From contig CBFDEM010000057.1 of assembly GCA_965603825.1 (NCBI GenBank), positions 682,001-746,000 of the forward strand: a DNA stretch of 64,000 nucleotides. The letters are read 5' to 3'. This document shows, one piece after another, positions 3,343-53,956 of this stretch. Under the pieces are notes generated by a model that saw only the letters and a list, made by a program, of their open reading frames with translations, did no database searches and was not told the DNA's origin. This DNA is from Blepharisma stoltei ATCC 30299 (lineage: Eukaryota > Protista > Ciliophora). The position numbers were made by a program, and so were the translations under genes. Position 1 is the stretch's first letter. Every line of letters starts with the position of its first letter.

Positions 3343-4734
3343 ATGGGCTGCTGCAGTGCTACATCTTGTAAAACTAATACAAAAACACCTTTAACTTCAA
3401 TAAGTTTAAGAGAGTACCCCAGAAAGACCATTCTCAGTATAAAGTCAAGAGCTCAGAATTCCATTAAAAAATCTAAATTAGATGATGTAGAATTTGATCT
3501 CACAAATCCAGTTTTCGCATATTCAAAGCGCTTTAATCTAGGCGATAAAACATTTTGAGCTTCTGCCTGCGTCATTCCAGGGTTTGATCCTAAAGGTGAA
3601 ATCCCTAAAACCTGCCAAGACTACTCTTCATTTTTGAAAGATGACAAAAGCGCTTTACTAGTCCTTTTCGACGGACACGGACCTGAAGGCGAAAAAGTTG
3701 TGGAGCGCTGCGGAGAAATTGTTGAGGAATTTTTCTCAACAAGAAAAGCAGAATTTGAGGTAAAATGAATATAGGAAGACCCATCAAGCTTTTTAAATGA
3801 GCTTACCAAAAGTTGTGATGACGAAGTCCTTGGGTCAACTAAATTTGATTCTTATTATTCAGGCTGCACAGAAGTCTTAGTTTATTTCCACGGAAATAAT
3901 ATACATTGTGCTAGCCTTGGTGACTCAAGAGCTATAATTGCAACGACTGAGCCGCCTGAAGTAATGCCTGCACCTACTGCTGCATGAGGAGAGGACAAAA
4001 AAGTGTTGGACGAAGTGAGGAAGAGAAGAAACAGCGTGGTAAATCCGGAAATCAAAGCAATCCAGCTTACAAAAGACCAGAAGCCAGAAGACCCAGAAGA
4101 ACTGATGAGAATTATTAAAAGTGGAGGAAGAGTCCAAAGGACAGTTGACGAGAACGGCAATAGAATTGGACCATTCAGAGTATGAGAACTCAATGTAAAC
4201 GCCCCAGGCTTAGCCATGAGCAGGTCTATAGGAGATGGCATGGGCACCAGGGTTGGCGTCATTGCAAAGCCAATATGCACAGAATACCAGCTTAAAGGAG
4301 AATCTGACTATTTTATAGTAGTCGCGTCTGATGGGGTTTGAGATGTACTTGATAACCAAGATGTAGTCAATTTTGTGGAGTATTATAGAAATAAATGCAG
4401 GAGGGAAATAGAAGTAGTGTCAAATGAGGAAAAAGTCACACAGGAAAACGCGTGTATTGCACAGCTCCTGTGTGAAGAAGCAAGAGTTAGATGGTTTTCT
4501 ATTGTAGAAGAAGAGGATGTGCTGATTGATGATATTTCGTGTGTGATTTTAGAAATAAATGAAAGCCAGTTCTTTATTGGACAAAGTGATATGAATAAGC
4601 GGCCGAATTTAGAGCCTTCAATTAGTCATATAGAAATGCATGAGCATAGGACACCATCTTTAGATGATGTAATTTTGAGAGACCCAAGAAGAAGCTCTGT
4701 TGTAGGAAAGGATGAAGATTTATTAAAAGAATAA
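3343..4734 (+). CDS. protein phosphatase 2C (PPM family), N-terminal MGCC acylation motif
   Basis: With TGA=Trp and intron 3760-3774 removed: CQD, LFDGHG, LGDSRA, GLAMSRSIGD, VASDGVWD, DDISC. Confidence 0.9.
3760..3774 (+). other. 15-nt spliceosomal intron
   Basis: GTAAAATGAATATAG; ends in an in-frame TAG; removal restores the PP2C frame; A at position 10. Confidence 0.9.
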
Positions 4735-4785
4735 ATTAAACGTGGACATTATATATAGCTATGATTTATATAGGTAATATTTATA

Positions 4786-7700
4786 TTACTTGCTGCTACA
4801 TTGTGATTCTGCCTGGTGAAGCTGCTTCAAGGCTTCCTCTTTAATTTTATTTCAGTCCCGCTTCTCTTCATTGATTGGCTCAGGACAAGGGCTCATTTCT
4901 TTACTTTTATCCTTTTTTTTGATTAATGAGCTTTTAATAAGGCTGCTAAGTACTACTGATAAATTATTCATTTTGTGTTCAAGAATTTCCATTGAAATAT
5001 CTACTGTACCATAAAACTTGATACATTTCGAAAAATTATCCATTAAGATACTTTCTATATGACTTTTTGATATATTTTGCAGAGGCAGCACCGCACTTTT
5101 TGGATCCTCATTAATGATTTTTTCAATTTTTCCACAAGCCTCAGAATCTTTTCCAGCCTTTAAAATTCTTTTTATTTCATTTATTTGATTTACAATCCCT
5201 TTAACAGCTTTTTCAATAATTTCAGGATTTTTTGACACGAAAATTTCTCTTAAAGTTTGTACTAAGCTTGAGTCAGCTTTTATATGGTCAAGAATAAAAT
5301 GTGGGGAGCTATCATACATTTTGCAGATTTTATTTAGAATTTCATCTGATTTTTTCCTATCTGCTTTTAGCCTCCCAATACAATTATAAAGCTGATTGAT
5401 GTCTTGCTCTTCAAGCTCTTCCTGAAGCTCAGACACAATGTCGTATAGCTTTTGTAGATCAACATATAATGCATCTCGGTCGTTTTTTAAGTCAATTACT
5501 CTATCAATTAGCAAATTGGGGTTATCTTCATCAAGTTCTTGGCAGAGATTTTCAATGACTGCGTTTAAATTGGGGAAAGAGTTGATTTTTTGTCGCTCAT
5601 CTTCGCTCAGAATTTTTCTACCAGTTGTTGGGCGAGGTGTAAAAGCGCCTGAAGAAATTATTGAATTTCTTGAGCTTATGTCTCTTTTTAGATCCTATAT
5701 AAATTATACAAGTTTTGGAAACCCATCAGTATTTTTTACTTGGTCAAGGTCTATTTGTAGACGTTTCTGATTACTTATTTGTTGATTCAAATCATGAATT
5801 TCATGATTTTTTGTTTCTATTTCTGCATTTAGCTTATTTAGTAAATTCTCCAATTCTTTTTTATTCACTCCTAATAATGATATTTCTTTTTCCTGAATTT
5901 TGCATTTGTCCTCAAGCTCTCTCAGCTTGACTTTCAAAGTATCCCTTTCCTTAATGCCTTCTTTTTGTATATCAGCTGCATAATTTGTGATATACTCATT
6001 ACTTTTTGTGAGGTCCATCTTTTCTGCTTCTATCCCTCTGATTTTTTCTTCTAAAAGCTTAATTCTTTCAGCTGATGCATCTTTTGTCGGCTTTTTTTTG
6101 TTAATTTGTTGCAGTCTTTCAAGGTCTAATATTCTGGCTTGGTTTTCTTTTAGTTTTTTATTTGCAGCTGCCAGCTCACTTTCCAGCTGGGCTATTTTTA
6201 TTTGGCCATCCTTAATCTTTTTAATTGCGTTAGAGCTTGTCCTTTTCGCTTCTTTCAGCTCATCTTGAAGACTTTGCTGACCATTTTCTAAATCAACTAC
6301 AGGGCTTCGATTTCTAGGGCTTACAACCTTTTTTTGGCTCAATTTTAGCTGGTCTAATTCTTTTTGTAAATTATCATAATTTTTATATACACTTAGCAGC
6401 TCATCTCTTTGGGCTTTGATTATTTTTTCTAATTCTATTGGGGAGTTTTTCAGTGTTGGGCTGCCTGGTTCGATTTTAAACGATGCAGCACTTTCATTCA
6501 AGCTTCCCCCTTTATTCTTTTTTGCGTCATTCAGCTCTTTGGCGATTTTCATGGCTTCTTCTTTCAGCGCTTCTTTATCATTTTCAATTTCAATTTCTCT
6601 ATTTTTGGCTTCTTCAAACTTATTTTCATAGTCAAGGCATACTTCTTCAAGATAAGAGATTTTCTGCTGAAGCTCGTTAATTTCTTCTTCTTTAGTTTGC
6701 GATAAAGCCTCGTATTTTCCAGTAAGTTCATCTATTGATTTTTTCAGAATTTTGCTTTCTAAGTCGATAGAAGTAAGTTTTTCAGTTAGTGAGTGGATAT
6801 ATTTGTCTTTTACTTGGATTTGGGAATTTAGCTTCATTTCTTCTTCGAAGTCTCTTCTCATGAAGCCTCTGGAAGACTGGGTGCCTCCTAAAGAAGAATT
6901 TTTTGATTTTTCTTTTAGAAGCTGAGATAATGTTGGGATTTGGCTTTCATATTTTGCTAAGGACCTTTCTTTTTGGTTCAGCTTTTCTAATATTTCTGCA
7001 ATTTTTTGGTTCGTTTGTGCAGAAAATTCATTTATAGCCTCTGCAGCCCAATTTTTAAGGGAAACCATTTCAAAGCCTCCTCCTGACCCAAAAGAGTTTG
7101 ACCTTGAAAGTCTTACCTTATCAGAGTCTGACTGAATCGACTTCATATGCATTTGATATTTTTTCACAAATTTCGTCATTTCTTGATACTGTTCCTGCAG
7201 AAGTTCTGACTCTTCCCTCACTTTTCTCAGTTTTTCTTTCAAGCCCTCAATATTTTCTTTCAAGCTTGAATTTTCTTCTAACAAAGCAACCATATCTTGT
7301 CCTTTCAAAGTATCTTTAGGATAAGGCTGCTCCAAGTTGCACTTCCCCATTGAATTCTCAAACTGAAAAGTCGTGCTTTTCGACAAATTAATCGAATTAA
7401 AAGACCCTAGCCTTTTTGGAGAAAAAGAAAGTGACATCGTCTTCGACTCAAGCAAATCCCCATCAAGCATTTTCACTTTACTCGTAATCGCTTCTATTTT
7501 TTGCTTTAATTCATTCACTTCTAGCTGCTGCATTCTTTCATATTCAATTTCAAATTTCTTTTTTCTCCCAATTAACTCTTTTAACTCCTGAAAAGTGTTT
7601 TTAAAATCAAAAGCCGAGCTCTTCACGACCGAAGTCCAAATAAAGGAATTCAAGTCAGTAAAGGCTTTTGCAATCACTTGCCTGATCATATCATCAGATA

Positions 7701-8096: not shown

Positions 8097-9095
8097 TTAG
8101 AAAAGGATGTCTGCAGTTGGCTGGGCTGATGTAAAAGAGCTGCGGCCTCGGAGGACTCCACAGTCAACGAGGCCTAAGATATTTAGTTCGACGTGCTGCA
8201 AAGAGACCATAAGAATTTTGGCGCCTTCGTCTTCGATGTAGTTGTGGTTGAGAGAAAAAATTTTAAGCATTGTGAGTCTTGGGAGCTCTTTTGCAAGGCA
8301 CATTATGCCTGATTTTGTGATGCTGTTGGTGTCAAGGTATAGCTCGCTTAATGAAGAAGGAAAAGCTTGAGCAAGTGGGAGCAAGCCTTCAGATTGGATA
8401 TTGTTTTCGCTTAGTTTAAGCGTTTTTAAGCCTAAAAGGCCTTTAATTCCTGCTGCAATTGACCGAGTCCCGTCAATTCCAATTTCATTTTTCTCGAGAT
8501 CTAAAACTGCTAAAGATGATAATGAAGCTAGTGTATTCCCCAAAGATGCAGCACCCAGGTCTCCTATCATATTTTCTCCTAAATGTAATACTTGAAGAGC
8601 TTTTAATCCATAAAGTCCAGTTGCAATATATTTAATCCCTTCATCTCCTAAACTTGCATTTTGAATTAGTAGTCTTTCTAAGGAATACATAGAATCTAGT
8701 GCTTCAGCCACCCTTTTTGCACCTTCAGTGCCTATGCTATTAAAGCTTAATTCAAGCTCTTTGAGATTAGTTAAGTCTTTTAACGGATCTGCTAGAATTT
8801 CTCATACCTCATTTCCTGTAAACGCCGAATTTAGGATTAATTTGTGCAGGTGGTAATAGTAAGGCAAGACCACAGATAAAAAGGAGGTATTTTCTTCGTT
8901 AATTTCTTTATAGCTTAAATTTATTGTAGATAAATCGGTTTGTTTTTGTTGGTAAACTAGGTCTACCAAGTGCGATATAGATTTATTCATATTGCTACAG
9001 CTATATGGATAGGCAGTTGGGTCTTTTAAGGAGTGCCGAAGATTAAGTAAATCTGAGTCTGGAGTAGAGCGGTAGCATGCGCAATTACTGCCCAT
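8097..9095 (-). CDS. RNI-like leucine-rich repeat protein (NLRC3/RanGAP-type LRRs)
   Basis: ORFs 8802-9095 and 8097-8711 join via TGA=Trp (GNEV-W-EILADPLKDLTNLKELELSFNSIG); ~28-aa LxxLxLxxNxIGDxG repeats; MGSNC N-terminus. Confidence 0.85.
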
Positions 9096-9214
9096 TGATA
9101 TTTAACTTTTATTATTTTTATTGGATCTTTTATTTATCATTGGCTTACTAATTTTCAATTTATTTATCAATCAACAAAAATTAGTATTTTATTTAATTAT
9201 ATCATAGATAAATC

Positions 9215-9595
9215 AATACCAAAATCTTATAGGAATCTCTTTTATCTTCTTCAGAAACTCATTTCTTGTCCCAATATTTTCTGATGCCATATCTTAGCTA
9301 ATTCTTTACTGGTTTTATCATAATTTAGCTCTATGAATTGTTTGAACCTTTCTATATCTATTATTAATCTGCGATGACCTGTGTGATATCCTGTCTTTGC
9401 TTTTATATCGCCTGTTTGCTTTTTTAATTTCTTCCATTTTATTATAGTCTTTCTACTAATTTCAAATATTTTACTAGCTCTTTTATCGTGTTACCATCCA
9501 ATAAAAAATTCATTACTCTTAATCTTAAATCATATGAATATGCTTTTGCCTTAACGTTTAACCAGTAGTATTTATATAGTTTGACTTAAGTATAA
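9215..9595 (-). mobile_element. decayed bacterial IS630-family transposase (N-terminal HTH plus start of the catalytic region)
   Basis: Minus strand reads AKAYSYDLRLRVMNFLLDGNTIK, then after a frameshift ASKIFEISRKTIIKWKKLKKQTGDIKAKTGYHTGHRRLIIDIERFKQFIELNYDKTSKELAKIWHQKI, then after an apparent deletion IGTRNEFLKKIKEIP. The expected ATG reads AAG at 9550-9552; a possible TA-flanked end lies near 9593. Confidence 0.8.
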
Positions 9596-9753
9596 ACTAT
9601 TTTATACATGAAGTCACTACATTATGGCTTTATGCTATATTTAGAAGATAAACGATATCATACGTAACTTATAAAAGCAAAAAACAAAGTCTTAATGACT
9701 TTATTTAGTGATTTTTTTCCTTACTGTTACCTATATTTTAAGGAAGTTTGGGA

Positions 9754-9864
9754 TTAAGAGATGCTCTCAATAAATATCCAGCACCTCAGATATTTAATAG
9801 TCAGCAAGGTAGCCATTATACAGGGCATGATCATATTGAAATATTAAAAAATAATAATATTCAA
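9754..9864 (+). mobile_element. fragment of a bacterial IS3-family transposase (integrase core)
   Basis: LRDALNKYPAPQIFNSQQGSHYTGHDHIEILKNNNIQ resembles the IS3 core motif ALxxYGxPEIFNSDQGSQYTSxxxxxxLxxxxIQIS; catalytic D reads Q. Confidence 0.7.
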
Positions 9865-9868
9865 AGAT

Positions 9869-10534
9869 ATGAAAAATTATTATCGAGCCACACAAATATA
9901 TAGTCTGGCTATTGATTACTTATCTACCGCATCTAGAACTGAGTCCCAAAAGGGATTGACTACAGAAGTACAAAAACTCTACTCTGGAGCGAGAAACAAG
10001 TTTATCAATACTCTAACCTTTGGTATAGGTGAAGCAGCAGTATTTTTGGCTTACTTTCATAGCAACGGCAAAAGTGTACCAGTTGATTTCGAATTAGCGG
10101 AGTTCTTTATCGTTTTAGGTAGTAAGCTCAATGACTCATTATCTATTCAATTGATAAATGAAGTCTATGATTCTGAAAGTCCTATTAACATGAGTATTGA
10201 GTATCAGCGATCTCATCATGATTATTCAAGTTATTTAGAATTAGCGCAAAAATATCGCGACATTATTCATGTCATTACTCAAAAATATCCCGTTAGCACA
10301 GAGTTTGATGTTAGTGCGCAATTATGGGCCATGAAGCTTATTCATGATGAAGCTGGCCCTTTATTTGATATACATAATGATTACAATGATTATTTTCCTA
10401 ATATTCCAGTATTTCAACCATATAGTCTTTCTCATCCGCTTGCACCAGCAAGCATAGAAGAATATGAAGTAAACACAAACGGTCAGTATAATGAGGAAAG
10501 TTCAGCTCATTCTTGTCACTGTTATATTTTTTAG
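9869..10534 (+). CDS. bacterial-type protein with a Sel1-like repeat and C-terminal CaaX box (putative endosymbiont effector)
   Basis: 221-codon open frame; GIGEAAVFLAYFHSNGKSVPVDFELAEFFIVLG is Sel1-like; ends SCHCYIF*; abuts the IS3 fragment. Confidence 0.6.
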   Translation: MKNYYRATQIYSLAIDYLSTASRTESQKGLTTEVQKLYSGARNKFINTLTFGIGEAAVFLAYFHSNGKSVPVDFELAEFFIVLGSKLNDSLSIQLINEVYDSESPINMSIEYQRSHHDYSSYLELAQKYRDIIHVITQKYPVSTEFDVSAQLWAMKLIHDEAGPLFDIHNDYNDYFPNIPVFQPYSLSHPLAPASIEEYEVNTNGQYNEESSAHSCHCYIF

Positions 10535-10617
10535 TGTATGAACTTTCTATGGCACTGTTAACAAAAATAATTTAATTATTTAATAAATCATGCTATAATT
10601 CACTTATTCATAAATAA

Positions 10618-12171
10618 ATGTCAGACTCTAGCAGCTCTGAAGAACTAAGCCCTAGACAAAAGCAGCTACGAAGTTTCAAACAAACAGCTTTAGGCATGCT
10701 AATCACTTCAAGTTTTACCAGAAATCCTTCAGAGCTTCTCACACAAAAACGAATCCAAATAGAGCAGCTCAACAGTCAAGCTTTTTCAATGCATCTCCAA
10801 AACTTAGAACAAGAAGAAGAAAACCAGCCCAATGCCAAAAATCGCTATTACAAAATGCCAATTGTAAAAAGGCTCCCATCACGATATAAACGAATTTCTC
10901 CTTTAAAACGCCCATCCCACGATCTGCAAGAAACAAAAGAGCCTGATTTTCCAGAAATCGGAGAAGTTTTTTGGTCAAAAATCGACACCCATGGCTGGAT
11001 CCCTGAAACTCGGCAAAGTGCATCATTAACTGAAGCTGGCTCAAGGCTTTATTTAATAGGAGGCACAAGTCGAGATGTCCATTCTGATATCAATGTATAT
11101 TACCCTTCACAGAAAAAATGAGAAAAAATCAAAGCAAAAGGCATTGAAGCTGACCCCAGATTTGGGCACACAGCTGTAGAACTTAGAAGAAAAATCGTTG
11201 TATATGGAGGAGAAACCAGCCACTCTAGAAGTAACAGTCAGCTGAGAGAGTGTTTAAATGAGGTAAAAGCGTTTTCTATTGATGATAATGAATGAATTTA
11301 TATTAGGACAACTGGTGTTTTGATACAGTCAAGGAAAAATCATTGTGCAGCTGTAGTAGGAAAACATATGCTTATTTATGGAGGGTTAAACCAAAAAAAT
11401 AAAGCATTAGGAGATGTCGCTGTACTCAACATGAAAAATTTTAAATGAAAAGCATTAGAAATCGCTGGGCAGAAGCCTAAAGAAACTGCATTCCATGCCT
11501 GTGCAACTGTGCTAAACACAGAACAGCTTAGAGCTGAAAGCATTTATAATATACCTACAGCAAGCAATCTAGATATAAAGATCCCTGGGATTTATATATT
11601 TGGAGGTGTAGGAGATGATAGAAAACCTAATAACGATCTATGGATTTTGAATGTGGGTGGAAAAACACTATCATGGACTAAGCCAGTTACAACAGGAGAG
11701 CCACCTTCTCCGAGATTTCAGCATAGTATGGCTTATAATGATAGAGCAAAGGTATTATGTGTTTTTGGAGGGAGAATTGATACAGGCGGCTCATCGCATT
11801 ATACATGTTTTAATGATATCCATATACTTAAACTTGATAATTTGATGTGGGCGACTCTCCGGGTTTTTGGAAATATCCCTGCTTCAAGATCAGGACATTC
11901 TGCAGCTTGTGCTGGGACAAAACTGTTTATTTTTGGAGGAGTAAGCAATACATGTTTTTGCAATAGTGATTTATATGTGTTGGAATTGAACCAAAAAGCT
12001 GTAAGATATACAATTGAAGAGGAAGAAAGAAAAAAGCAGCAAGAAATAGAGATGGCTTTAATGAAGGAAAGAAAGACAGAGGAGCATCAGAAGAGGATTA
12101 GCCCTGCAAAGCTTAGAGGGATAGAAAGACCAGGGGTTAAGTTTCACTTAAGTGATAATGTATCAGCATAA
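10618..12171 (+). CDS. Kelch-repeat beta-propeller protein
   Basis: Continuous with TGA=Trp at Kelch W positions; repeats PRFGHTA..VYGG, RKNHCA..IYGG, PRFQHSM..VFGG, RSGHSA..IFGG. Confidence 0.88.
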
Positions 12172-12272: not shown

Positions 12273-14228
12273 ATGACATTCAAATTAAGTGAAGAATTCA
12301 TTCGCCCCTATAGAGAAATAAAGCCAAAATTCGGGTTTAACGGCCTTGGAGAAATAATTTTCAGAAGGTCCTATTCAAGAATGAAAGACGATAGATCTTA
12401 TGAAAGCTGGTCAGAAGCCTTAGAAAGGGTCGTAAATGGGACCATAAATCTGATGCTCAAAAAGTCTCAAAGCCCCGTTGAAAACCTGACAGAAACCGCC
12501 GAAAAAATGTATGATAAAATGTTCAACTTCAAATTTTTGCCTCCAGGAAGAGGGTTATGGAACATGGGCTCAAAATGCACAGAAGTTGACAATTTTTATA
12601 CAAATTTGAACAACTGTGCTTTTGTTTCTACCAAAGATATAGACAATGGAAACCCAAGCAAGCCTTTTGCTTTTTTAATGGAGGCGTCATTTTTGGGCAT
12701 AGGGGTGGGCTTTGATACTAAGGGGGCAAATAAAATTTCAATTTGTTCACCAAATGGAATTCAGGATTATTCAGTTGAAGATACAAGGGACGGATGGGTA
12801 AGTTCAGTAGCCCTTCTGCTAAACAGCTATTTTAAAGCTGATCAGCCAGAAATCACTTTTAGCTATGAGAATATTCATGATGCTGGAACCCCTGTCAAAG
12901 ATTTTGGAATCTCAAGAGGCTCAGACCCTCTTCAAAATTTGCACTCAAGCATAAGAAATCTGCTAACACCTCAAATCGGCCAAAAAATTACCTCACGGCT
13001 GATAGTAGACATCATGAATTTAATAGGGAAATGTGTGGTAGCTGACAACGTCCGAATGCCAGCAGAAATTGCATTTGGTGAGCCAAATGACCTAGAATTC
13101 CAAGATCTAAAAGACTATGAAAAAAATCCAGAAAGACTCGAATTCGGCTGGAATAGTAACAACTCAATACTAGCTGAGCTCGGAATGGACTATCAAACAA
13201 TTGCAGAAAAAATCATAAAGAATGGAGAGCCAGGCATCGCCTGACTAGAAAACATGCAAAAGTATGGAAGAATGCAAGACGCGCCTAACAACAAAGACAA
13301 GGAAGCCTTGGGTGGGCCTCCTTGTTTAGAGCAAACCTTAGAGTCCTATGAGCTGTGCTGCTTGGTAGAAATTTTTATCAACAACCACAGCTCTCTAGAA
13401 GAATTTTTAGACACGTTAAAATACGCGTTTATTTATGCAAAAACAGTGACTCTTGGGCTTACTCATTGGCCTGATGTAAATGAAGTCATGACCAGAAATA
13501 GAAGAATTGGAACCTCGCTGACTGGAATCGCCCAATTTTTAGGGAGAGAGAGTTTGGGAGCCCTAAAATTGTGGTGCTGTAAAGGGTATCGATATCTGAA
13601 GAGACTTGATAGGCAGCTATCAAGGCTTTTTGGTGTTTCAGATTCGATAAAAATTACAACAGTCAAGCCAAGTGGAACCATTTCTTTATTAGCTGGTGCG
13701 TCTTCGGGGTTGCATTTTCCATTTGCTCACACTTATATAAGAAGGATTCGTATGCAGTTATCAGATACGAACTTGCTTAATAAGCTGCAAGCACAAGGAT
13801 ATCATATAGAGCCAGATTTTATGAACGAAAACGCTATGGTAGTCTCAATTCCAATAAAAGAAAACGAAAACGTGAAGGTTTTAAAAGAAGTCAGCATGTG
13901 GGAGCAGTTAAGTCTGGCTGCCTTTATGCAGTATTATTGGGCTGACAACCAAGTTTCATGTACAGTTACTTTTGATCCAGAAACTGAAGGAAAATTAATT
14001 CCTGACGCTTTGAATTATTTTCAATATAAGCTAAAAGGAATTTGCTTTTTGCCTTCAAGACAAAGTTTGCCTTATCCTCAAATGCCATATGAAGAGATAA
14101 GTGCAGAAAAGTACTTGGAGATGCAAAAAAGCATAAAAAGTGACGTGGAGTATCAACAACTCTCAGAAGAAGTCGAAAGAGCTAGAGTGCCCGTTGCATT
14201 TTGTGACGGCTGCACTGCAGTTGTCTAA
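12273..14228 (+). CDS. nrdJ: class II (adenosylcobalamin-dependent) monomeric ribonucleotide reductase, divergent, 651 aa
   Basis: ORFs join via TGA=Trp at 13242 (NGEPGIA-W-LEN); FLPPGRGLW, LNNCAFVS, GIGVGFD, SNNS, PCLEQTLESYELCCLVE, RRIGTSLTG, TTVKPSGTISLL, WADNQVSCTVTF, YPQMPYEEI, C-terminal FCDGC. Confidence 0.9.
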
Positions 14229-42909: not shown

Positions 42910-44343
42910 ATGGTCAGGTACTTTTTAGTTCTTACGCTGCTTTCGTTGAGCACTATGACTAGTTCAACTTTTTCTATTCCTTGTGATCTGGAAAATGATA
43001 AAAATCCTTCTAAGCCTTGCTCAAATATAAGTTCTTGGGATTATAAAAATTTCTCATATTCCAATGCTAATGAGGAATCAATCTTTCAAAACTCAAAAGC
43101 AAACCATCCTCATGAAAAATCAAAGAAAATGAAGATCGCGATAATCGGATGTCTTTTTATCGGACACATAACCCCAACAATTGACATGGCGAAATCCTTA
43201 ATATCAAGAGGCCATGAAATTATCTATTATGCTCCAATACAAGCTGAAAAGCTAATACAAGCGTCAGGGGCAAAATTCATCCCATACCCCAGCCCACAAA
43301 TTTCAAAGCTTAAACCTGTTGATAGTGTCAAACTGAAGCCAACTGAAATTGGCTTAATATTTGTAAACAAATTCGGCTCATTTACTGAGTTTATTATGCC
43401 ATGGTTTAAAGAGTCATTTGATAAAGAAAATTTTGATGCTGTCATCTTTAGCTCATTTACTGTCTGAGGAAATACCGTTACCAATTACTTCAAAAAGCCA
43501 TTTTTATGCTTTGAGCCTTCTATATTGCCAGCAGAAGACGAATTTTGGCTACAGACTCATTTCTATGATGATGGGAAAGAAGAGCAAACTAAATTTGCTG
43601 AAAAGCTTCACAATAAGTATGATTCTATTGGAAAAAATCTTGTAGAAATGCTATCATGCAGTTATGCAGAAAAAGTTCTAATGTTTTCTCCTCAAAAGTT
43701 TCTTGAAAAAACTATTTCATCAAAATTTCCCAATCCTGATAAATATATATTTTTAAACAGTGTTTCTTCTCAGACATCCAAAAACCCTATTCCTGAATTG
43801 AAAGAAAACAGTTTAATATATTTCTCATTAGGAACCATAATAAATCAAAGACTTGATATTTTTGGCTCAATTATAGAATTCTTCTGCAATACAGGATATA
43901 AGCTAAAAATCAGCTGTGGAGGAAATGAAAATCTTTATCAAGAAATTATTTCTAAATATCATTATGATAACATCGAAATTAATTTCTTTGCAAGCCAGCT
44001 TGATATCCTCCAAGAAGCCACGATTTTTATTACTCATTCAGGGCTCAATAGTGTAAGAGAAGCAGTTTCTAATACGGTCCCAATGATTACTATTCCTCAG
44101 GGTGCCGATCAGTTCGAAATATCCAGAAGTGTCACTGAGCTTGGACTAGGTGTCTCATTTGAAGATTATGAAGGAAGCTTAGACGATAAAATCAAACTTG
44201 CTTTTAATGAGATTGAAAGCAATTTTACAAAATATAAAGAAAATCTAAAAAGGGCTCAAAAGTCGTATTTCGATGAGCCAGCTTATAAAGATTCCATATC
44301 AGAAGTGGAAAATTATTTACTTAATATAACTCATAAGCTTTAA
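42910..44343 (+). CDS. UDP-glycosyltransferase, GT1/MGT (OleD/YjiC-like) with signal peptide (copy A1)
   Basis: MVRYFLVLTLLSLS signal; IGHITPT, LISRGHEI, IYFSLGT, FITHSGLNSVREA, IPQGADQF; TGA=Trp at 43465. Confidence 0.88.
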
Positions 44344-44366
44344 TTTATTTCCAAAAATTTATAAAA

Positions 44367-44861
44367 ATGTGGATATATCTATTAGGGATTTTATCAAATT
44401 ATTTAATAGCTTGAGGTTATGAAGAAGCAATAGGAAATCAACACAGTTGCAAAGTAATTAATGAATTTGTGAATAAAAAAAATCGATTTCAGTGCAGTTT
44501 AGATGAATATGATATATTTTCTGAAGCTTTAAATAAAGCAGCCACCAAAAGGAAAATTGGAATAATTGGATGTTTTGGCACTGATCACGTTATTCCTACA
44601 ATAGATGTAGCTAAATGGCTTACATTAAGAGGCCATGACGTTGTATTTTACGGTTCATTACACATTCAAGAAAAAAATTGAACTCTCAGGAGCAAAATTC
44701 GTCCCATACCCAGAAGAATTTTTCACATTTTAAAAAGATGAAATGAAACAAAAATTGTGGCATGCGGCGCAATTGTTACAGTTGACTAATTTATTAATGA
44801 TAATAATATACTTTGATTTTTAGGACTATTTTTCATCATTTTGCAATATTTAGGTTTGCTG
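44367..44861 (+). pseudogene. 5' fragment of a type-B glycosyltransferase, frameshifted and fused to a dynamin fragment
   Basis: Near-identical to 47695 onward up to ~44670; then a +1 frameshift, stops and small deletions; homology ends at ~44861. Confidence 0.88.
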
Positions 44862-45580
44862 TTGGCTGTAGGGGAAAACAAATAACCATTATTTTAATAC
44901 GTTTTTAGAGGATTATTCTGGGAACTATAATGCTACAGAGGATTACAATAATGAAGAAATTCAAAAAATTATGGTCCAGCATAAAGCGGATTATATTCCT
45001 GGATTTCCATCAGCAAATGTCTTGCTGTTTTTGCTGCATCAACAGCTGGAAAGGCTAAAAGGGCTTTTGACATTTTAAATGGGATGCATTCCTATTTAGA
45101 CAAGCTTTATCGGAATATTTAGTATTTTGCACAAAGAACGGATTCGATACCGAAAAGTGATAATAAAGTCCTAAAAACCGCAGAAAGTCTATTTGTGGAC
45201 GAAATCAGAAGTAGAATTGATACTTATTTTAGAATTGTGGTAAGAAATGTAAGAGATACAGTTCCAAAGACATTGGCTATTTCTTATGGATAAAATGCAA
45301 ATGAAGCTTTATGAAAGCATTAATAGAAGTGAAACAGTGCTAAATTTATTGAGCGAGCCTGCTGAAATAGAAAACATCAGAAAGCAGCTTTCAACATTAA
45401 GAAAAGCAGAGAAAATCCTAAAGCAGACCAAAATCTTGCTTTTCAAGCAATTTCAATTGAAGATGAAAATAGTAAGATTGAAAGCGAAGCGAGCGGAAGT
45501 GGGACTGCAAAAAAAAGGCAGACAAAGATAGCATGATAGGTCAAAGGCCAAGCAAAACATCGCCGGAAGGAATCTTTTAA
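44862..45580 (+). pseudogene. decayed 3' half of the dynamin gene (copy of 41418-42317)
   Basis: Aligns to dynamin from TTGGCTG (41418) to GGAATCTTTTAA; deletions of ~145, 13 and 12 bp plus frameshifts. Confidence 0.9.
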
Positions 45581-46237
45581 TTATAATCTTTTATAGGGAA
45601 CAATTAATTAATAAACAGTTAAGAATTAACTGAGTGGTGGTTAACAAATTTTGAGTTAAAATTTCAAAAATTGTAAATGGTGCTTCTGGTGAATTATTAA
45701 AAAATGCTTTTGGTTTTTTATAAATGGTGTTTTGGTAAAAACTCAAGGTCGCGAGCTAAACTAATCAAATAAAATTTCTCGTTTGAATTTTATAGATTGT
45801 AGTAAAACAATTTCAAATTTAGATTCATTGCTCAAATTTTAATTTGAATATTCATTTTTTCAATTTCTGTTATAAAATTAATATTCAGATTTTATCTAAA
45901 TAAATCAAAATTAATAAAGGTAATCTGCCAGCTTTAATATATGTACAGGTCTGGCCTGTTTTAAAGCTTCACTGCTATTTGAGAAATTATTTCTAACTTC
46001 AATCAAAGAACCACCTATATCCTGGTTTTCAATAAAATTTTTTCTGTTAATTTTTATGCAATTTAAATCTGCTCTAGCAAGTATTAACACTTTAAATCGG
46101 CTATAAATAATTCTAGTAAGCTTTAACACTTTTTAAATTGAAAAATAAAATTTTAAACACTAAACTCCATTCCCGAAACACCATATTTCTTCCTATTTAA
46201 ATCTGCTTGAAATTTTGAAAGTTATATAATAAAATTA

Positions 46238-47671
46238 ATGGTGAAAAGTCTTTTAATTTTTACGTTGCTTTCGTTGAGCATTATGACTACATCAGCTTGT
46301 TCTATTCTTCATGAGCTAGAAGATGATAAAACTACTTCTAATCCTTGTCCAAAAGCAAGTTCCTGGGATCATGAAAACTTAGCATATTCTAATGCTAATG
46401 AAGAATCAGTCTTTCACAATTCAAAAGCCAACCATACTCAAGAAAATCCAAAGAAAATGAAGATAGTGATAATAGGATCTCTTTTTATGGGCCACATAAC
46501 CCCAACAATTGACATGACAAAATCGTTAATATCAAGAGGCCATGAAATTACCTATTATGCTCCAATACAATCAGAAAAGCTATTACAAGCGTCAGGGGCG
46601 AAATTCATCCCATACCCCAACCTAGAAATATCAAGGCATAGTACTGTTGATGGTACAAAAGTGAAGATAACTCAAATTGGCTTACAGCTTATGCACATAC
46701 TCGGTTCGTTTACTGACTTTATTATGCCATGGTTTAAAGAGATGCTAGATAAAGAAAGTTTTGATGCTATCATCTTTAGCTCATTTACTATATGAGGAAA
46801 TACCGTTACCAATTACTTGAAAAAGCCATTTTTATGCTTTGAGCCTTCTATATTTCCAGCAGAAACCGAATTTAGGCTACAGACTCATTTTTTCGATGAT
46901 GGGAAAGAAGAGCAAGCTAAATTTGCTGAAAAGCTTCACGATGAGTATAATTCCAATGGAAAAAATCTTGTAGAAATGCTATCATGCAGTTATGCAGAAA
47001 AGATTTTAATGTTTTCTCCTCAAAAGTTTCTTGAGAAAACTGTTTCATCAAAATTTCCCAACCCTAATAAATATATTTTTTTACACAGTATTTCTTCCCA
47101 GACATCCAAAAACCCTATTCCTGAATTGAAAGAAAACAGCTTAATATATTTCTCATTAGGAACTCTACTAAATGAAAGGCTCGATATTTTTGGCTCAATT
47201 ATAGAATTCTTCTGTAGTACAAAATATAAGCTAATAATTAGCAGCGGAGGAAATGAAAATCTTTATCAAGAAATTACTTCTAAATATCACTGTGATAACA
47301 TTGAAGTTAAGTTATTTACAAGCCAGCTAGAAGTTCTCCAAGAAGCCGCAATTTTCATTTCTCATTCAGGGCTCAATAGTGTAAGAGAAGCAGTTTCTAA
47401 TACGGTCCCAATGATTACTATTCCTCAGGGTGCCGATCAGTTCGTAATAGCCAGAAGTGTCACTGAGCTTGGACTAGGCGTTTCATTTGAAGATTATGAA
47501 GGAAGCTTAGACGATAAAATCAAACTTGCTTTTAATGAGATTGAAAGCAATTTTACAAAATATAAAGAAAATCTAAAAAGGGTTCAAAAGACACATTTCG
47601 ATGGGCAAGTTTATGAAGATTCCATGTTAGAAGTGGAAAATTATTTGCTTAATATAACTCATAAGCTTTAA
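46238..47671 (+). CDS. UDP-glycosyltransferase, GT1/MGT-like with signal peptide (copy A2)
   Basis: Paralog of A1; MGHITPT, FISHSGLNSVREA, PQGADQF; TGA=Trp at 46793. Confidence 0.88.
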
Positions 47672-47694
47672 TTTATTTCCAAAAATTTATAAAA

Positions 47695-49110
47695 ATGTGG
47701 ATATATCTATTAGGGATTTTATCAAATTATTTAATAGCTTGAGGTTATGAAGAAGCAATAGGAAATCAACACAGTTGTGAAATAATTAATGAATTTGTGA
47801 ATAAAAAAGATCAATTTCAGTGCAGTTTAGATGAATATGATATATTTTCTGAAGCTTTAAATAAAGCAGCCACCAAAAGGAAAATTGGAATAATTGGATG
47901 TTTTGGCACTGATCACGTTATTCCTACAATAGATATAGCTAAATGGCTTGTATTAAGAGGCCATGACGTTGTATTTTACGGTCCATTACACATGCAAAAA
48001 AAAATTGAACTCTCAGGAGCAAAATTCGTCCCATACCCAGAACAAAATATAACATTTAAAAATAATCGTGAAAAGGAGGAAATGGAGCAAAAAATTATAG
48101 CATACGGCGCAATTGTTAAAGTTGATTACTTTATCAATAATAATCTACCTTGATTTTTAGAGAGCTGTGAAAAAGAAAATTTCGATGGGATTATTTTTCA
48201 TCATTTTGCAATATTTGGGTTTGCTGTAGCTAAATACTTAAATCTGCCAAACCTCTGCTTAACTTGTGGAGCTGTGCCGCCTGAAAGAGAAAAAATCGGG
48301 GATGATTATCCTAAAAATTGGAAAAAAAGAAAAATCGATTTTTCAGCTGAAGTCCAGAAGCAAGTTCCTTATATTGGGGAAATATCGAAAAAAGTCCATT
48401 CATGCAGCAATGTTGGCAAAGTTTTAATGGTGACTCCTAAAAAATTTGTCGAAGCAATTGCGAATCGAACTATTAAAGAGTCTTATCGATATATACATTT
48501 AAGCTCAATTATGTCAAAAAATTCTCATGATTATGTACCAGAACTGAAAGAAAATAGCTTGATTTATTTTGCATTTGGAACAATTTTTACTCGGTATAGC
48601 CAAGATATATATGATTCTGTCGCTAAATTTTTTTGTGGAACTAAATATGAACTTATTATGACAACAGGAGGAAATGAAGAACTTTATCAATATTTGTTGC
48701 CAAAATATAGCAACTGTAGCAATATAAGTATTAATTTATATGTAAATCAGATGGAGGTTCTTAGAAGAACAGCGATTTTTATAAATCATGCAGGGTTTAA
48801 TAGTGTTCAGGAAGCAATTCCACTTATAATTCCAATGATAGTAATCCCACAAGGAGCTGATCAGTATGCTATTGCCAGATGCATACACAGTTTAAAAATT
48901 GGAATTAATTTTAGGGATTTAAAATGAACTATTACCCAAAACTTGAGGTATGCTCTTAATGAAATAGAAAAAAACTTTACTAATTATAAAGAAAATATAA
49001 AGAAAGTACTTAAAACGCATTTTGATGGTGAAAAGCTTGAAGATTCTATCATAAAAGTTGAAAATTATTTGTTTAATTCAACAAGAATTAATAAAAAACT
49101 CATGTTTTAG
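47695..49110 (+). CDS. UDP-glycosyltransferase, GT1/MGT-like with signal peptide (type B)
   Basis: ATG 47695 (MWIYLLGILSNYLIAWG); GTDHVIPT, IYFAFGT, FINHAGFNSVQEA, PQGADQY; three TGA=Trp; stop TAG 49108-49110. Confidence 0.85.
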
Positions 49111-49171
49111 CTATTTAATTGATAAATTTTTTTTGGAAAAAAATTCTAATTGATTAGTCAACTGCTTTTAA

Positions 49172-49640
49172 ATTCGGGTGTATTCAGCTGCGCCATAAAT
49201 GGGTTTAAGCTTTATTTAAGGGCATAGGAGATATTTTTGGTAGATTTCGCCAGGATCTGAAAGAGTTTAATATTTATTGATCTAGTTGGAGGGGATATGC
49301 CAAGCTCTTGTGAGGTAACTTTTTCCCAGAGAGCAGGCATAGATTTTTGGTAAAAAGAATATAAACTTCCTGTTCTAAGCATATAGAATGCTTGTTTTGT
49401 TATCGTCCGCAGCCTTATATTGCTATTATCCTATATATGCGTTACATTGAAGCAAAGCCATAAGTTGGGCAGCCCAATGGTGTAGAGATCCCAAAATAAT
49501 GACTTAGTATCTATTAGGTTATTTATTTCAAGTAATTCCAAGAGATGAGGATAAATTTCCATGTTTTGATTATTTAAATGAGCAATGAAACGCTATAGAT
49601 TTTAATAGGCGCTAGCTATGATATCGTAATGCTTTATATA
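49172..49640 (-). pseudogene. inverted, internally deleted relic of the USP gene at 60432-62558
   Basis: Reverse complement matches ~60350-60647 (upstream region, ATG at 49562, retained intron GTAACGCATATATAG at 49431-49445) joined to 61826-62044. Confidence 0.88.
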
Positions 49641-50501
49641 AAAAGCACTTAAAAAATACTGAAAAAAGCTTAGAATATAAGAAAACTAAAAAAATTATTT
49701 TGATGTTTCAAGCTTGATGAGAATTTAATGGAGTTATAAAATTACTTATTCAATATTGTGAATAAATAATGAATAAAGTTAGCTCTCTTTTAAATTTAAG
49801 TCCATATAAGCCTGTGATATTACTAAAACTAGTCCTTGCAAGGCACAATAATACTTGTCCAAATTTCCAAAATAATTATAAGCACTTAAAATTCAAATAT
49901 GTTATACAATTAGATAGGCTAATGGTCTGATTTATTTTAAATTTTATTAGACAAATTTTTTGTATATTTCTAAAACAGGATTAAAGTCAGTTACATTATT
50001 TTAGCATTTTACTTTTAGCATTTAATTATAAATACAAAATTATTCCGAAACTTTTGGTATTTTTTATTTGCAAGTCGTTAAATTAGATGGTGAAATTTTA
50101 GTTAAAGGAATATTATAAAGACTTTTAGCAAGCTGAGCCAGCGAAAAAAGTTTTATTTCGAGATAAATTTATATATGAATAAGATTTAATTAAAATTTTA
50201 CTTTCAACACTAATAATTAACGATATAATAAAAATAATTTTTGGTTTGATCATACACTAATACTTGATAGTAAAATTCTTAATTTAAAATTCATCAACTC
50301 TAAACTAAGATTAGCCTTTTAATGCTTTTAAAAAAGAAATAATTATTTTGCATTTATTTATTATGAGTAACCTTGATCCATTATCAAATAACAAATTTTT
50401 GACCAACATTTAATTTTTTAATGCATGAAATTTTTAAATTAAAATCCTACTCTGTTTTTCGGTTTTTAGAGCCATTTCAAGTACTGGCAAAGATATAAAA
50501 C

Positions 50502-51941
50502 ATGGAAAAACTTAGCAAAAGTTTACTATTTTTTATACTTACTTTCAGTTATTTTTTCGCTGTCGCAGATGCCAGCATTAAGACTATAAAAAAAGCTAAT
50601 ACTCCAGTCTATTGTGAGCTGTCAATGCTGGATGAGTCTTCCCATGAGGATAGTTTTCGATCAAAGAATATTCCAGAAAAATCTTTACCACAAAGAGCTG
50701 AACAAAACAACAGCACTGGAAGGAAATTAAAGATCGCTATCATAGGCTGTATTGCTGTTGGTCATATAACCCCAACAATCGATATGATAAGAGCTTTAAA
50801 ATCAAAAGGTCATGATGTCGTTTTTTACGCACCCATTTATACTCAAAATTTAATAGAGTCAACCGGAGCGAAATTTATCCCATATCCAGAACAAAAGCAA
50901 GCTAAAATTACACCAATTGATAGAAAAGAGATTAGGGTCAATGAAACTGGATTGCAACTTATGTCGATTTTTGGTGGCTACACAGATTATATAATGCCAT
51001 GGTTTTTAGAAAATTTTGAAAAAGAGCAATTTGATGCTGTTATTTATAGCTCCCTTACTATTTGGGGCAATGCTGTAGCAAGCTATTTCAAAATTCCATA
51101 TTTATGCCTTGGAATTTCAGTTCTGCCAGCAGAGGACAATGCTTGGAATCAAACCCATTTTTACGATGAAGGAAAAGAGCAGCAGCTAGAATTTGCAAAT
51201 AGGCTTCATAATCAATATAATACTACAGCAGTTAATTTGATAGAAATGTTTTCGTGCAGTTATGCGAAAAAAGTATTGATGTTTTCTTCACAAAAATTCT
51301 TAGAAGCAGCATCAAATTACAGGTTTTCAGAGCCAGAAAAATATTTTTTTTTGAATTCCATTTCTTCTCAAACATCAAAAAATTTTATTTCTAAATTAAA
51401 AGAAAACAGTATTATATACCTATCACTTGGAACAGCTTTTAATCAACGCCCAGACATTTTTGAATCTATAATAACCTATTTCAACCAAACCAAATATGAG
51501 CTGATTGTAAGCACTGGGATGAATGAAAACCTCTATCAAGCTCTTACGTCTAAATATAACAGCAGCAATATAAAAATTAATTTATACACCAATCAGGTAA
51601 GGCTGCTTAAAGATGTAGCTATTTTTATAACCCATGCTGGGCTTAATAGCATAAAAGAAGCAATTTCTTTTACAATACCAACAGTTGCAATTCCTCAAGG
51701 GGCTGATCAATTTTGAATTTCAAAAGCTATTACAGATCTTAAAATTGGAGCTTCAGTTGAAGATTATGAAGGTAGCTTAGATAATAAGTTTAAAGCTGCG
51801 TTTCAGGAGATTGAACAGAACTTTGAGACTTATAAAGAAAATCTGAAGAATGTTCAAAAAAATTATTTTGATGGCCCAAGTTTTGATGAGTCTATTATGG
51901 ATTTAGAAAACTATTTATTAGATATAACGGATAAGCAATAA
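50502..51941 (+). CDS. UDP-glycosyltransferase, GT1/MGT-like with signal peptide (copy C1)
   Basis: MEKLSKSLLFFILTFSYFFAVADA signal; VGHITPT, IYLSLGT, FITHAGLNSIKEA, PQGADQF-W; stop TAA 51939-51941. Confidence 0.88.
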
Positions 51942-52534
51942 TAGACTTATCATTAATTATTAGCAATATTATGCATATTTATAAAATCATCAAACATTAT
52001 AGATTTCATATTTCAATATATAAATATATAAATATTTAGCATTTATTTATTTAATTATCGACAAATATAATAAATTTAGATGCATTAATAAGATTAAAAT
52101 TATTTAGAGAATATTAAAAAGACTTTAGCAAACTGAGCTAGCGAAAAATGTTTTATTTCGAGAAAAATTTATTTATCAACTCGAATTGGATCTAATTAAA
52201 ATTTGCTTCCAGCATTGGTAATTAACCTTTAATAAAAATAAAATAGTAAATTTCTTAATTTAAAATTTATCAAATCTTAACTCAGCTGAGCCTTTTGATC
52301 GTCTCATTTATAGTAAACTATATCGATATTTAAAGCAAAGGCACAAAAATACTTAAAACTTCAATAATTAATTGAATACCTTTTAATAAAGAATTAATTA
52401 TTTTCCTTTATATTTTATCAGCAATCTAATCCATTTTTAAATAAAATTTTGAATAGCATTTAATTTTTAATGCATGGTTATTTTTAACATATAGTCTCTT
52501 AAAGCTATTTTAGGTACTGATAAGTATATAAAAC

Positions 52535-53956
52535 ATGGAAAAGCTTGCTAAAAGTTTACTATTCTTTATACTTACTGCCAGTTATTTTTTCGCAGTTGCA
52601 GATGCCAGCACTGAGACTCTAAAAGCTGACACTCCAGTCTATTGTGAGCCGTCAATGCTGCATGAGTCTTCCCATGAGGATAGTTTGCGATCAAAAAATA
52701 TTTCAGAAAGAGCTGAACAAAACAACAGCACTGGAAGGAAATTAAAGATCGCTATCATAGGCTGTATTGCTATTGGTCATATAACCCCAACAATCGATAT
52801 GACAAGAGCTTTAAAATCAAAAGGTCACGATGTCGTCTATTACGCGCCCATTTATACTCAGAATTTAATAGAGTCTACTGGAGCGAAATTTATCCCATAT
52901 CCAGAGCAAAAGCTAGCTAAAGTTACACCTCTTGATAAAAAAGAGATTCGGGTCAATGAAACTGGATTGCTACTTATAGCGGCGTTTGGTGGTTACACAG
53001 ATTATATAATGCCATGGTTTTTAGAAAATTTCGAAAAAGAACAATTTGATGCTGTTATTTATACCTCCTTTGCTATTTGGGGCAATGCTGTAGCAAGCTA
53101 TTTCAAAATTCCATATTTATGCCTTGGGACTAGCGTACTGCCAGCAGAGGACAATGCTTGAAATGAAACCCATTTTTACGATGAAGGAAAAGAGCAGCAG
53201 CTAGAATTTACAAATAGGCTTCATAATAAATATAATACTACAGCAGTTAATTTGATAGAAATGTTTTCGTGCAGTTATGCGAAAAAAGTATTGATGGTTT
53301 CTTCACAAAAATTCTTAGAAGCAGCATCAGATCACAGGTTTTCAGAGCCAGAAAAATATTTTTTTTTGAGTTCCATTTCTTCTCAAACATCAAAAAATTT
53401 TATTTCTAAATTAAAAGAAAACAGTATTATATACCTATCACTTGGAACAACTTTTAATCAACGCCCAGACATTTTTGAATCTATCATGACCTATTTCAAC
53501 CAAACCAAATATGAGCTGATTGTGAGTGCTGGAATGAATGAAAAACTTTATCAAGCTCTTACGTCTAAAAATTACAGCAGCAATATAAAAATTAATTTAT
53601 ACACCAATCAGGTAAGGCTGCTTAAAGATGTAGCTATTTTTATAACCCATGCTGGGCTTAATAGCATAAAAGAAGCAATTTCTTTTACAATACCAACAGT
53701 TACAATTCCTCAAGGGGCTGACCAATTTTGAATTTCAAAAGCTATTAAAGATCTTAAAATTGGAGCTTCAGTTGAAGATTATGAAGGTAGCTTAGATGAT
53801 AAGTTTAAAGCTGCGTTTCAGGAGATTGAACAGAACTTTGAGACTTATAAAGAAAATCTGAAGAATGTTCAAAAAAATTATTTTGATGGCCCAAGTTTTG
53901 ATGAGTCTATTATGGATTTAGAAAACTATTTATTAGATATAACGGATAAGCAATAA
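52535..53956 (+). CDS. UDP-glycosyltransferase, GT1/MGT-like with signal peptide (copy C2)
   Basis: Close paralog of C1; two TGA=Trp; stop TAA 53954-53956. Confidence 0.88.

Follow-up and report, generated by a model that had tools for sequence, protein, structure and literature searches.

Results

Structure of the locus

The window analyzed in this study (the whole stretch of 64,000 nucleotides) comes from Blepharisma stoltei, whose somatic (macronuclear) assembly, as examined here, comprises 41.46 Mb in 64 contigs. Long genes were obtained in the window with one reading only, in which TGA codes for tryptophan and TAA and TAG serve as stops. Two genes read in this code, encoding an LRR and a Kelch-repeat protein, flank a piece of bacterial DNA (Table 1), as had been stated in an earlier note on this sequence. 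The extent given there (9215-10560) was correct with regard to the bacterial nature of the DNA, but not to its boundaries, since the retained piece spans positions 9232-10618. The region 9150-10620 is present in a single copy in the somatic assembly.

A second contig version of the locus (GCA_914767885.1, locus L015) was reached via a look-up of the 221-aa ORF carried by the bacterial piece. This germline-like version is consistent with the MAC+IES assembly published by Seah et al. (10.1101/2022.05.02.489906). That assembly consists of IES calls inserted into the somatic backbone, and is not an independent de novo assembly; the IESs were called from micronucleus-enriched long reads, with at least 10 subreads per junction (10.1101/2022.05.02.489906).

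Table 1. Features of the locus in the window and in the germline-like assembly (L numbers), and further Rickettsia-like inserts
Feature	Position	Strand	Remarks
Host LRR gene	8097-9095	-	Left flank; read through TGA=Trp; two IESs within its germline version
Left junction	9230-9231	.	TA target duplication of the 7,119-bp TIR element; boundary of the 3,514-bp germline-limited segment
Retained bacterial piece	9232-10618		1,387 bp between the LRR and Kelch genes
IS630 relic	9232-9639	-	Extends into eliminated DNA as far as the first catalytic-Asp motif, LVFLDE
AT-rich spacer	9640-9752	.	Possibly decayed IS3
IS3-family integrase-core fragment	9753-9865	+	Approx. 110 bp around the second Asp motif
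221-aa ORF	9869-10534	+	Rickettsiaceae RP277-like family; Sel1-like helical domain, disordered tail, terminal CHCYIF (CaaX-type)
IS5-family left inverted repeat and leader	10547-10618	+	Coding start in eliminated DNA
Right junction	10608-10618	.	11-bp TA-containing direct repeat; bounds the 2,270-bp germline-limited segment
Host Kelch-repeat gene	10618-12171	+	Right flank; read through TGA=Trp
Left segment	L015 1850-5363		3,514 bp, TA boundary; excised at window 9231
Right segment	L015 6751-9020		2,270 bp; excised at window 10618
Second insert	Contig 15, approx. 435,400-437,750 (L098, approx. 4400-6750)		IS481 relic and 204-aa ORF without TGA codons
Third insert	Contig 51, approx. 677,600-678,950 (L099, approx. 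4600-5950)		IS481 5' part and 133-aa ORF

Relics of three insertion sequences

The earlier note had identified two IS relics from short peptides, and both identifications held. The peptides assigned to an IS630 N-terminus, AKAYSYDLRLRV and SKIFEISRKTIIKW, were located on the minus strand in two frames, which are joined via a one-base frameshift near 9477/9478, and the peptide assigned to an IS3 integrase core, YPAPQIFNSQQGSHYT, was located on the plus strand at approx. 9775-9822. A third element, the IS5 left end starting at 10547, had been missed.

The IS630 relic is 68% identical at the amino acid level to Rickettsia IS630, and 77% at the nucleotide level (over 287 nt, E 1e-53; 77-78% across copies). 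Its best matches among 72,556 plasmids are the IS630 elements of Rickettsia asembonensis and R. felis, while a search of species genomes, limited by its exact-pattern seeding, returned only cyanobacterial copies (43-52%). The relic was also recognized by the profiles HTH_Tnp_IS630 of Pfam (PF01710; E 4e-4 and 2e-3) and IS630 of NCBIfam (NF033545; E 1.8e-4), and the IS3 fragment by rve (PF00665; E 2.5e-3) and NCBIfam IS3 (NF033516; E 3.1e-3); both relics score below the curated cut-offs as a result of their short length.

The left end of IS630, with a TA at approx. 9638-9639, matches that of the Rickettsia copies, and the right end is absent. Besides the frameshift, the damage includes the loss of the start codon (9552) and an internal deletion of approx. 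75 nt near 9275. A complete DDE domain with an open frame is not present: only the first Asp motif occurs, and only in the germline version. This element is a relic and is not active. An origin from eukaryotic Tc1/mariner elements or retroelements, which the earlier note had regarded as fatal to its reading, was ruled out by DNA-level identity that extends over the bacterial IS left end.

The best plasmid matches of the IS3 fragment, which carries FNSQQG where FNSDQG is expected, are in three plasmids of Ca. Megaera polyxenophila (65% amino acid identity to the integrase), followed by Cardinium, and in one Rickettsiaceae genome the identity reaches 87% over 106 bp of DNA. Reliable alignment is confined to approx. 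110 bp, and neither OrfA/OrfB nor the full triad or terminal repeats are present.

In the case of IS5, the start codon and approx. 40 codons of a DUF4096 domain are located at L015 6764-6881, within eliminated DNA. The IS5 piece is colinear with an IS5-family element of Tisiphia (63% nucleotide identity over 203 nt, 55% at the amino acid level), whose ORFs match PF13340 and PF01609. The fragment alone gave no match in plasmids, Pfam, NCBIfam, metagenomes or the Atlas, and was recognized only in Rickettsiales genomes. The similarity ends at approx. codon 40; the DDE domain and the right end are absent.

The 221-aa ORF

The ORF of 221 aa (666 bp) is open, is present in a single copy and has been called as a gene in the public B. 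stoltei record. Since its frame is readable in the host code (with a TAG stop and no TGA), it could be expressed. A word-indexed protein search, which covers only proteins of similar length, returned only the ORF itself. HMMER analysis of 1.84 billion representatives revealed six weak relatives. Four of these are generic Sel1-repeat proteins; the other two are clusters that have no Pfam domain and whose named members are Tisiphia and Rickettsia proteins. Further relatives, most of them 200-240 aa in length, were identified in 301 Rickettsiales genomes (proteins named from Rickettsia and Tisiphia endosymbionts, R. felis and R. typhi), and a profile search added RP277 of R. prowazekii. All of the named family members belong to Rickettsia or Tisiphia (Rickettsiaceae). 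Pairwise E values between the ORF and its relatives range from 1e-12 to 4e-5, with identities of 23-39%.

The ORF shares with the RP277-like family a degenerate Sel1-like core and a Cys-ended tail, with a Cys at position -4, as in 13 of 16 relatives. Its score against Pfam Sel1 (PF08238) is 15.9 bits, below the curated cut-off of 30.7. The predicted structure comprises a confident helical domain (approx. residues 5-160) followed by a disordered tail. The nearest folds are Sel1-like repeat proteins, the best being LpnE of Legionella (Z 10.4, rmsd 2.8, 109 residues), a Z value in the range common for helical repeats, which says nothing on function. The ORF resembles LpnE in its Sel1-like helical fold, and differs from it in having one to two degenerate repeats below the Pfam cut-off and only 17% identity. 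AnkB and SifA are bacterial effectors bearing a CaaX motif, and the ORF resembles these in its terminal CaaX-type motif. Judged by this anatomy, the predicted protein is most likely a host-lipidated, membrane-anchored Sel1-like adaptor of the bacterium, which would be secreted and lipidated. The term effector-like, as applied to the ORF, refers to anatomy only, with the CaaX-type tail taken as a motif alone. No paper addressing what the RP277-like family does was found in literature searches.

The synonymous codon usage of the ORF is rickettsial: its score (+0.041) lies beyond the host range (-0.107 to -0.001; 21 host genes) and within that of Rickettsiales (median +0.056; 97 ORFs). In a tree with its relatives the ORF is found on a long branch and is unplaced, and the donor is therefore an unsampled lineage of the Rickettsiaceae. 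The 3' break of the IS3 fragment abuts the ATG of the ORF, and its relatives have longer N-termini; for these reasons the ORF may be approx. 10-20 N-terminal residues short. The earlier note had called the ORF intact, which is true of the open 221-aa frame, but may not be true of its N-terminus. With the IS3 fragment at the ATG, the own upstream region of the ORF has been lost. Matches to sigma-70 promoters were found at the level expected by chance (10 found versus 9.2 expected).

The germline version of the locus

Comparison of L015 with the window revealed seven insertions in the germline-like version, two of which flank the bacterial piece. Within the left segment are the 1.06-kb left arm, which carries a RING ORF, as well as a 172-bp tandem array, a nested TIR element rich in AT and an ORF in host code; the segment also takes in the final 29 bp of the IS630 relic. 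The right segment contains the IS5 coding start, an inverted 173-bp array, telomere-like repeats and the right arm, and also takes 50 bp of the native upstream spacer of the Kelch gene. Both are germline-only and bounded by TA-containing direct repeats, as are Blepharisma IESs. Direct repeats considered previously as a target duplication (D1/D2) were rejected as AT-rich chance matches; the true boundaries come from the germline comparison.

The two segments and the 1,387-bp middle together hold one element of 7,119 bp with a TA on both sides. Its inverted arms (1.06 kb) differ by 2 substitutions in 1,060 bp and 11 gap columns; each contains a small RING-type ORF. Tandem 172-bp arrays, inverted relative to each other, are located inside both arms, and there are exactly two occurrences of the terminal motif, one at either outer end. 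With its TIRs, target duplication and relatives at unrelated sites, the element has the properties of a cargo-carrying non-autonomous TIR transposon, and its length is close to that of the longest IES of the assembly (7,251 bp). Without the 7.1-kb element, the host spacer between the LRR and Kelch genes (approx. 190 bp) rejoins cleanly.

Both cuts were made inside bacterial DNA, 29 bp from its end on the IS630 side and 131 bp on the IS5 side. At the left junction, the IS630 frame runs 29 bp into the eliminated segment, completing the LVFLDE motif at the position predicted by four IS630 references. Homology on the eliminated side averages 18.75 of 29 nt, versus 8.75 of 29 for the somatic flank, and the score of the eliminated side is reached by one of 234,431 background 29-mers (the four references were chosen after a first pass with a stricter anchor cut-off). 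At the right junction, the IS5 colinearity of 203 nt gives an alignment score of 45, versus 6 for the somatic version. The left cut makes use of a TA located 29 bp inside IS630 and of the element's own TA, and the right cut of the 11-bp repeat common to the leaders of IS5 and of the Kelch gene (a match of this kind arose in 7 of 300 shuffles). The right cut overshoots the element by 50 bp, which in the somatic version places bacterial IS5 DNA directly before the Kelch ATG.

The two assemblies thus reveal bacterial parts, a TA duplication, near-identical arms and a fragment broken mid-IS at both ends; relatives of the element are cut out whole at the TA, and here two deletions remove the arms, leaving 1,387 bp. 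The earlier description of the insert as not eliminated applies to this middle part, but the fragment as a whole extends further, and its two ends are eliminated along with the arms of the element.

Several other features were observed within the eliminated DNA. At L015 7686-7712, in the right segment, there are 3.4 copies of an 8-bp unit that matches the Blepharisma telomere repeat; these telomere-like repeats may mark a healed break. A germline-limited host-code ORF inside the element (L015 4478-5361, plus strand) abuts the IS630 break, and neither a Pfam match nor a somatic paralogue was found for it. The nested AT-rich element of the left segment (L015 3136-3925) has C-rich inverted ends, and related ends occur in other IESs.

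Other members of the element family

Two further family members, located on other contigs, were reached via the RING ORF, at L020 8418-10834 (2,417 bp) and L021 7989-10845 (approx. 2.86 kb). They have the same ends and TA flanks, are located inside host genes and are absent from the somatic genome, i.e. they are excised whole. Both display terminal repeats of approx. 285 bp, tandem arrays of approx. 200 bp and a RING-type ORF. The arms of the 7.1-kb element are only 88% identical to these members. No match to a transposase was obtained among the element ORFs scanned.

Blepharisma is known to carry mobile IESs, including MITIES, Bogo and BstTc1; Bogo, BogoMITE and BstTc1 are characterized by a C-rich terminal repeat, a TAA or TATA target and a DDE_1 or DDE_3 transposase (Seah et al., 10.1101/2022.05.02.489906). 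The family reported here was not found in the parts of the preprint covered (10.1101/2022.05.02.489906), and to that extent is apparently undescribed. The 7.1-kb element resembles Bogo, BstTc1 and MITIES in being a germline-limited TIR element whose target duplication forms the IES boundary. Its outer ends are unlike the published repeats, and it differs further from Bogo and BstTc1 in its TA target, arms of approx. 1 kb, RING ORF and 172-bp arrays, as well as in having no transposase seen, a foreign cargo and excision in two pieces.

Long inverted termini and internal tandem repeats are also features of the Tlr elements of Tetrahymena, and Pack-MULE-type elements are TIR elements with captured fragments in their interior. 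By description, the Blepharisma element is similar in architecture to both, with inverted termini, internal repeats (as in Tlr) and interior cargo (as in Pack-MULEs), the cargo in this case being bacterial.

Further Rickettsia-like inserts

A profile search of the somatic genome for IS481 revealed relics on contigs 15 and 51, which are 74-82% identical to Rickettsiales copies and have their top matches in genomes that also best match the IS630 relic. The germline-like assembly also contains the contig-15 insert, inside and next to which there are IESs. The insert on contig 51 is located between a host retroelement and a cathepsin-like gene, and its IS481 is 83-87% identical to the contig-15 copy.

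Further integrase-core matches were recorded on somatic contigs 50 (398328-398768) and 36 (88492-88698), in a TGA=Trp or host-code context. These are probably host retroelement or domesticated integrases.

Discussion

Probable transfer of rickettsial DNA as transposon cargo

The best matches of all four parts of the fragment (IS630, IS3, the ORF and IS5) are in Rickettsia, Megaera or Tisiphia, and with the rickettsial codon usage they support, as the earlier note had proposed, a putative transfer of DNA from a bacterium of Rickettsiales type to the nuclear genome of the ciliate. We consider it probable that the whole of the locus is explained by a Rickettsiaceae fragment carried as cargo in a recently inserted TIR element, the arms of which are excised and the middle retained.

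According to this cargo explanation, a random piece of at least 1.55 kb of a Rickettsiaceae chromosome, broken mid-IS at both ends, would have entered the B. stoltei germline, and could have been patched into the interior of a TIR element by double-strand-break repair. The non-autonomous element would have been moved in trans by a host or germline transposase, and would have inserted recently at a TA in the LRR-Kelch spacer, before or after capture of the fragment. In terms of the scan-RNA model, the repeated arms would be marked by the editing machinery, which would cut at whichever usable direct repeats are nearest (29 bp and 131 bp inside the bacterial DNA), so that the single-copy middle would be missed; being present in the parental macronucleus, this middle may thereafter be protected. 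The dead IS relics did not mobilize the bacterial piece, and the ORF is most likely a passenger, which would still be open because the event is young.

A more far-reaching version, which we regard as unlikely, is that the TIR family acts as a vehicle capturing symbiont DNA and the IES machinery as an installer that leaves an expressed somatic cargo gene; if true, B. stoltei would transcribe a prenylated rickettsial effector-like protein, and the Kelch gene would have gained a new upstream region.

Although DNA elimination in ciliates is often described as defending the genome, and should prevent horizontal transfer, bacterial genes are numerous in ciliates. The locus appears to catch a transfer early, with its germline and somatic versions both public, and suggests one way past DNA elimination, in which a repeated vehicle is removed and a unique foreign middle is kept. 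It would in addition be a trace of a Rickettsiaceae infection that has not otherwise been reported for B. stoltei, whose genome holds at least two further inserts, and it indicates a germline element family that is yet to be described.

The presence of rickettsial DNA in a protist nucleus is already known, and it is the foreign cargo in a germline TIR element, trimmed to a bacterial core, that appears to be new. Kawafune et al. (2015) described rickettsial DNA in the nuclear genome of Volvox carteri (PMC4324946), and both cases involve kilobase-scale Rickettsiaceae DNA in the nucleus of a strain without a known current symbiont, as the footprint of a past infection. Unlike Volvox, Blepharisma has separate germline and somatic genomes, and the piece lies inside a TIR element that excision cuts through, with the middle kept. 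Transfer of genes from Rickettsiales to a ciliate has also been proposed for the Megaira-like ATP/ADP transporter genes of Mesodinium rubrum (bioRxiv 10.64898/2026.07.09.736142); in contrast to that gene-level phylogenetic candidate, the Blepharisma locus is a raw genomic fragment, which contains IS relics, has the codon usage of bacteria and can be traced to its junctions. No report of Rickettsia-like inserts in Blepharisma was found in literature searches, outside whose coverage many subscription papers lie. The main text and appendix of the Blepharisma somatic-genome paper make no mention of Rickettsia or symbionts, and the germline preprint (10.1101/2022.05.02.489906) makes none of symbionts.

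Alternative explanations

The matches point to a member of the Rickettsiaceae as the donor, for which there are two candidate routes: it may have been a symbiont of B. stoltei itself or of its prey, e.g. a Rickettsiaceae symbiont of green algae. The prey route, which is compatible with the cargo explanation, seems to us somewhat unlikely. Rickettsiaceae do occur in volvocalean algae (PMC4324946), the laboratory food is Chlorogonium, and literature searches found no rickettsial symbiont of Blepharisma reported; however, with at least three separate Rickettsia-like inserts in the genome, long intracellular residence is the better fit, and Rickettsiales are well known as ciliate symbionts (10.64898/2026.07.09.736142).

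Also compatible with the cargo explanation is a real transfer followed by domestication of the ORF, which would be transcribed in the macronucleus and selected as a prenylated adaptor, with the two-cut excision maintained in order to preserve the gene. An open 666-bp frame beside three broken IS elements, a conserved CaaX-type tail, an AT-rich leader and the gene call in the public annotation would agree with such a history. However, IS decay is normal inside Rickettsia genomes, as in truncated IS630 copies, and the arms are so young that an open frame needs no selection; the codon usage of this single-copy ORF has not been ameliorated and its N-terminus is possibly shortened. We therefore doubt that domestication has occurred, and rate it as improbable.

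A very unlikely alternative to the cargo explanation is that the bacterial DNA integrated first and that two copies of the RING element landed later on either side of it, in inverted orientation, so that the two segments would be ordinary IESs and no capture would have taken place. The family is mobile, the two sides are excised separately and the spacers between arm and array differ between them, all of which could be expected of separate insertions. However, there is no inner terminal motif, one TA duplication flanks the entire 7.1 kb and the spacer rejoins cleanly without the element, and the arms are near-identical to each other while being only 88% identical to family members elsewhere.

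We regard it as highly improbable that the locus is an artefact of assembly, in which reads of a contaminant or symbiont were joined to host contigs, or the inverted arms arose from fold-back chimeras of reads. The cultures were fed a green alga, and the arms differ by 11 gap columns, which are indicative of consensus noise in long reads. However, the homology to two different IS elements is continued by the germline-specific extensions, across both junctions and into sequence from a different library, the middle is not palindromic, the same element ends recur at unrelated loci, and the piece is single copy and lies mid-contig (>1 Mb) in the germline-like version.

Other features of the window

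A gene for a Class II (B12-dependent type) ribonucleotide reductase is located at 12273-14228 (plus strand); it has the host code and host codon usage, and its germline version contains three IESs. At 42910-53956 (plus strand), glycosyltransferase-like genes form a tandem array, five of them full-length and one broken; they have signal-peptide-like N-termini and low GC3, and their codon scores (-0.03 to +0.01) reach or exceed the upper end of the host range. Near 45286-45531, within the region of this array, the 3' end of the dynamin gene is present as a decayed duplicate.
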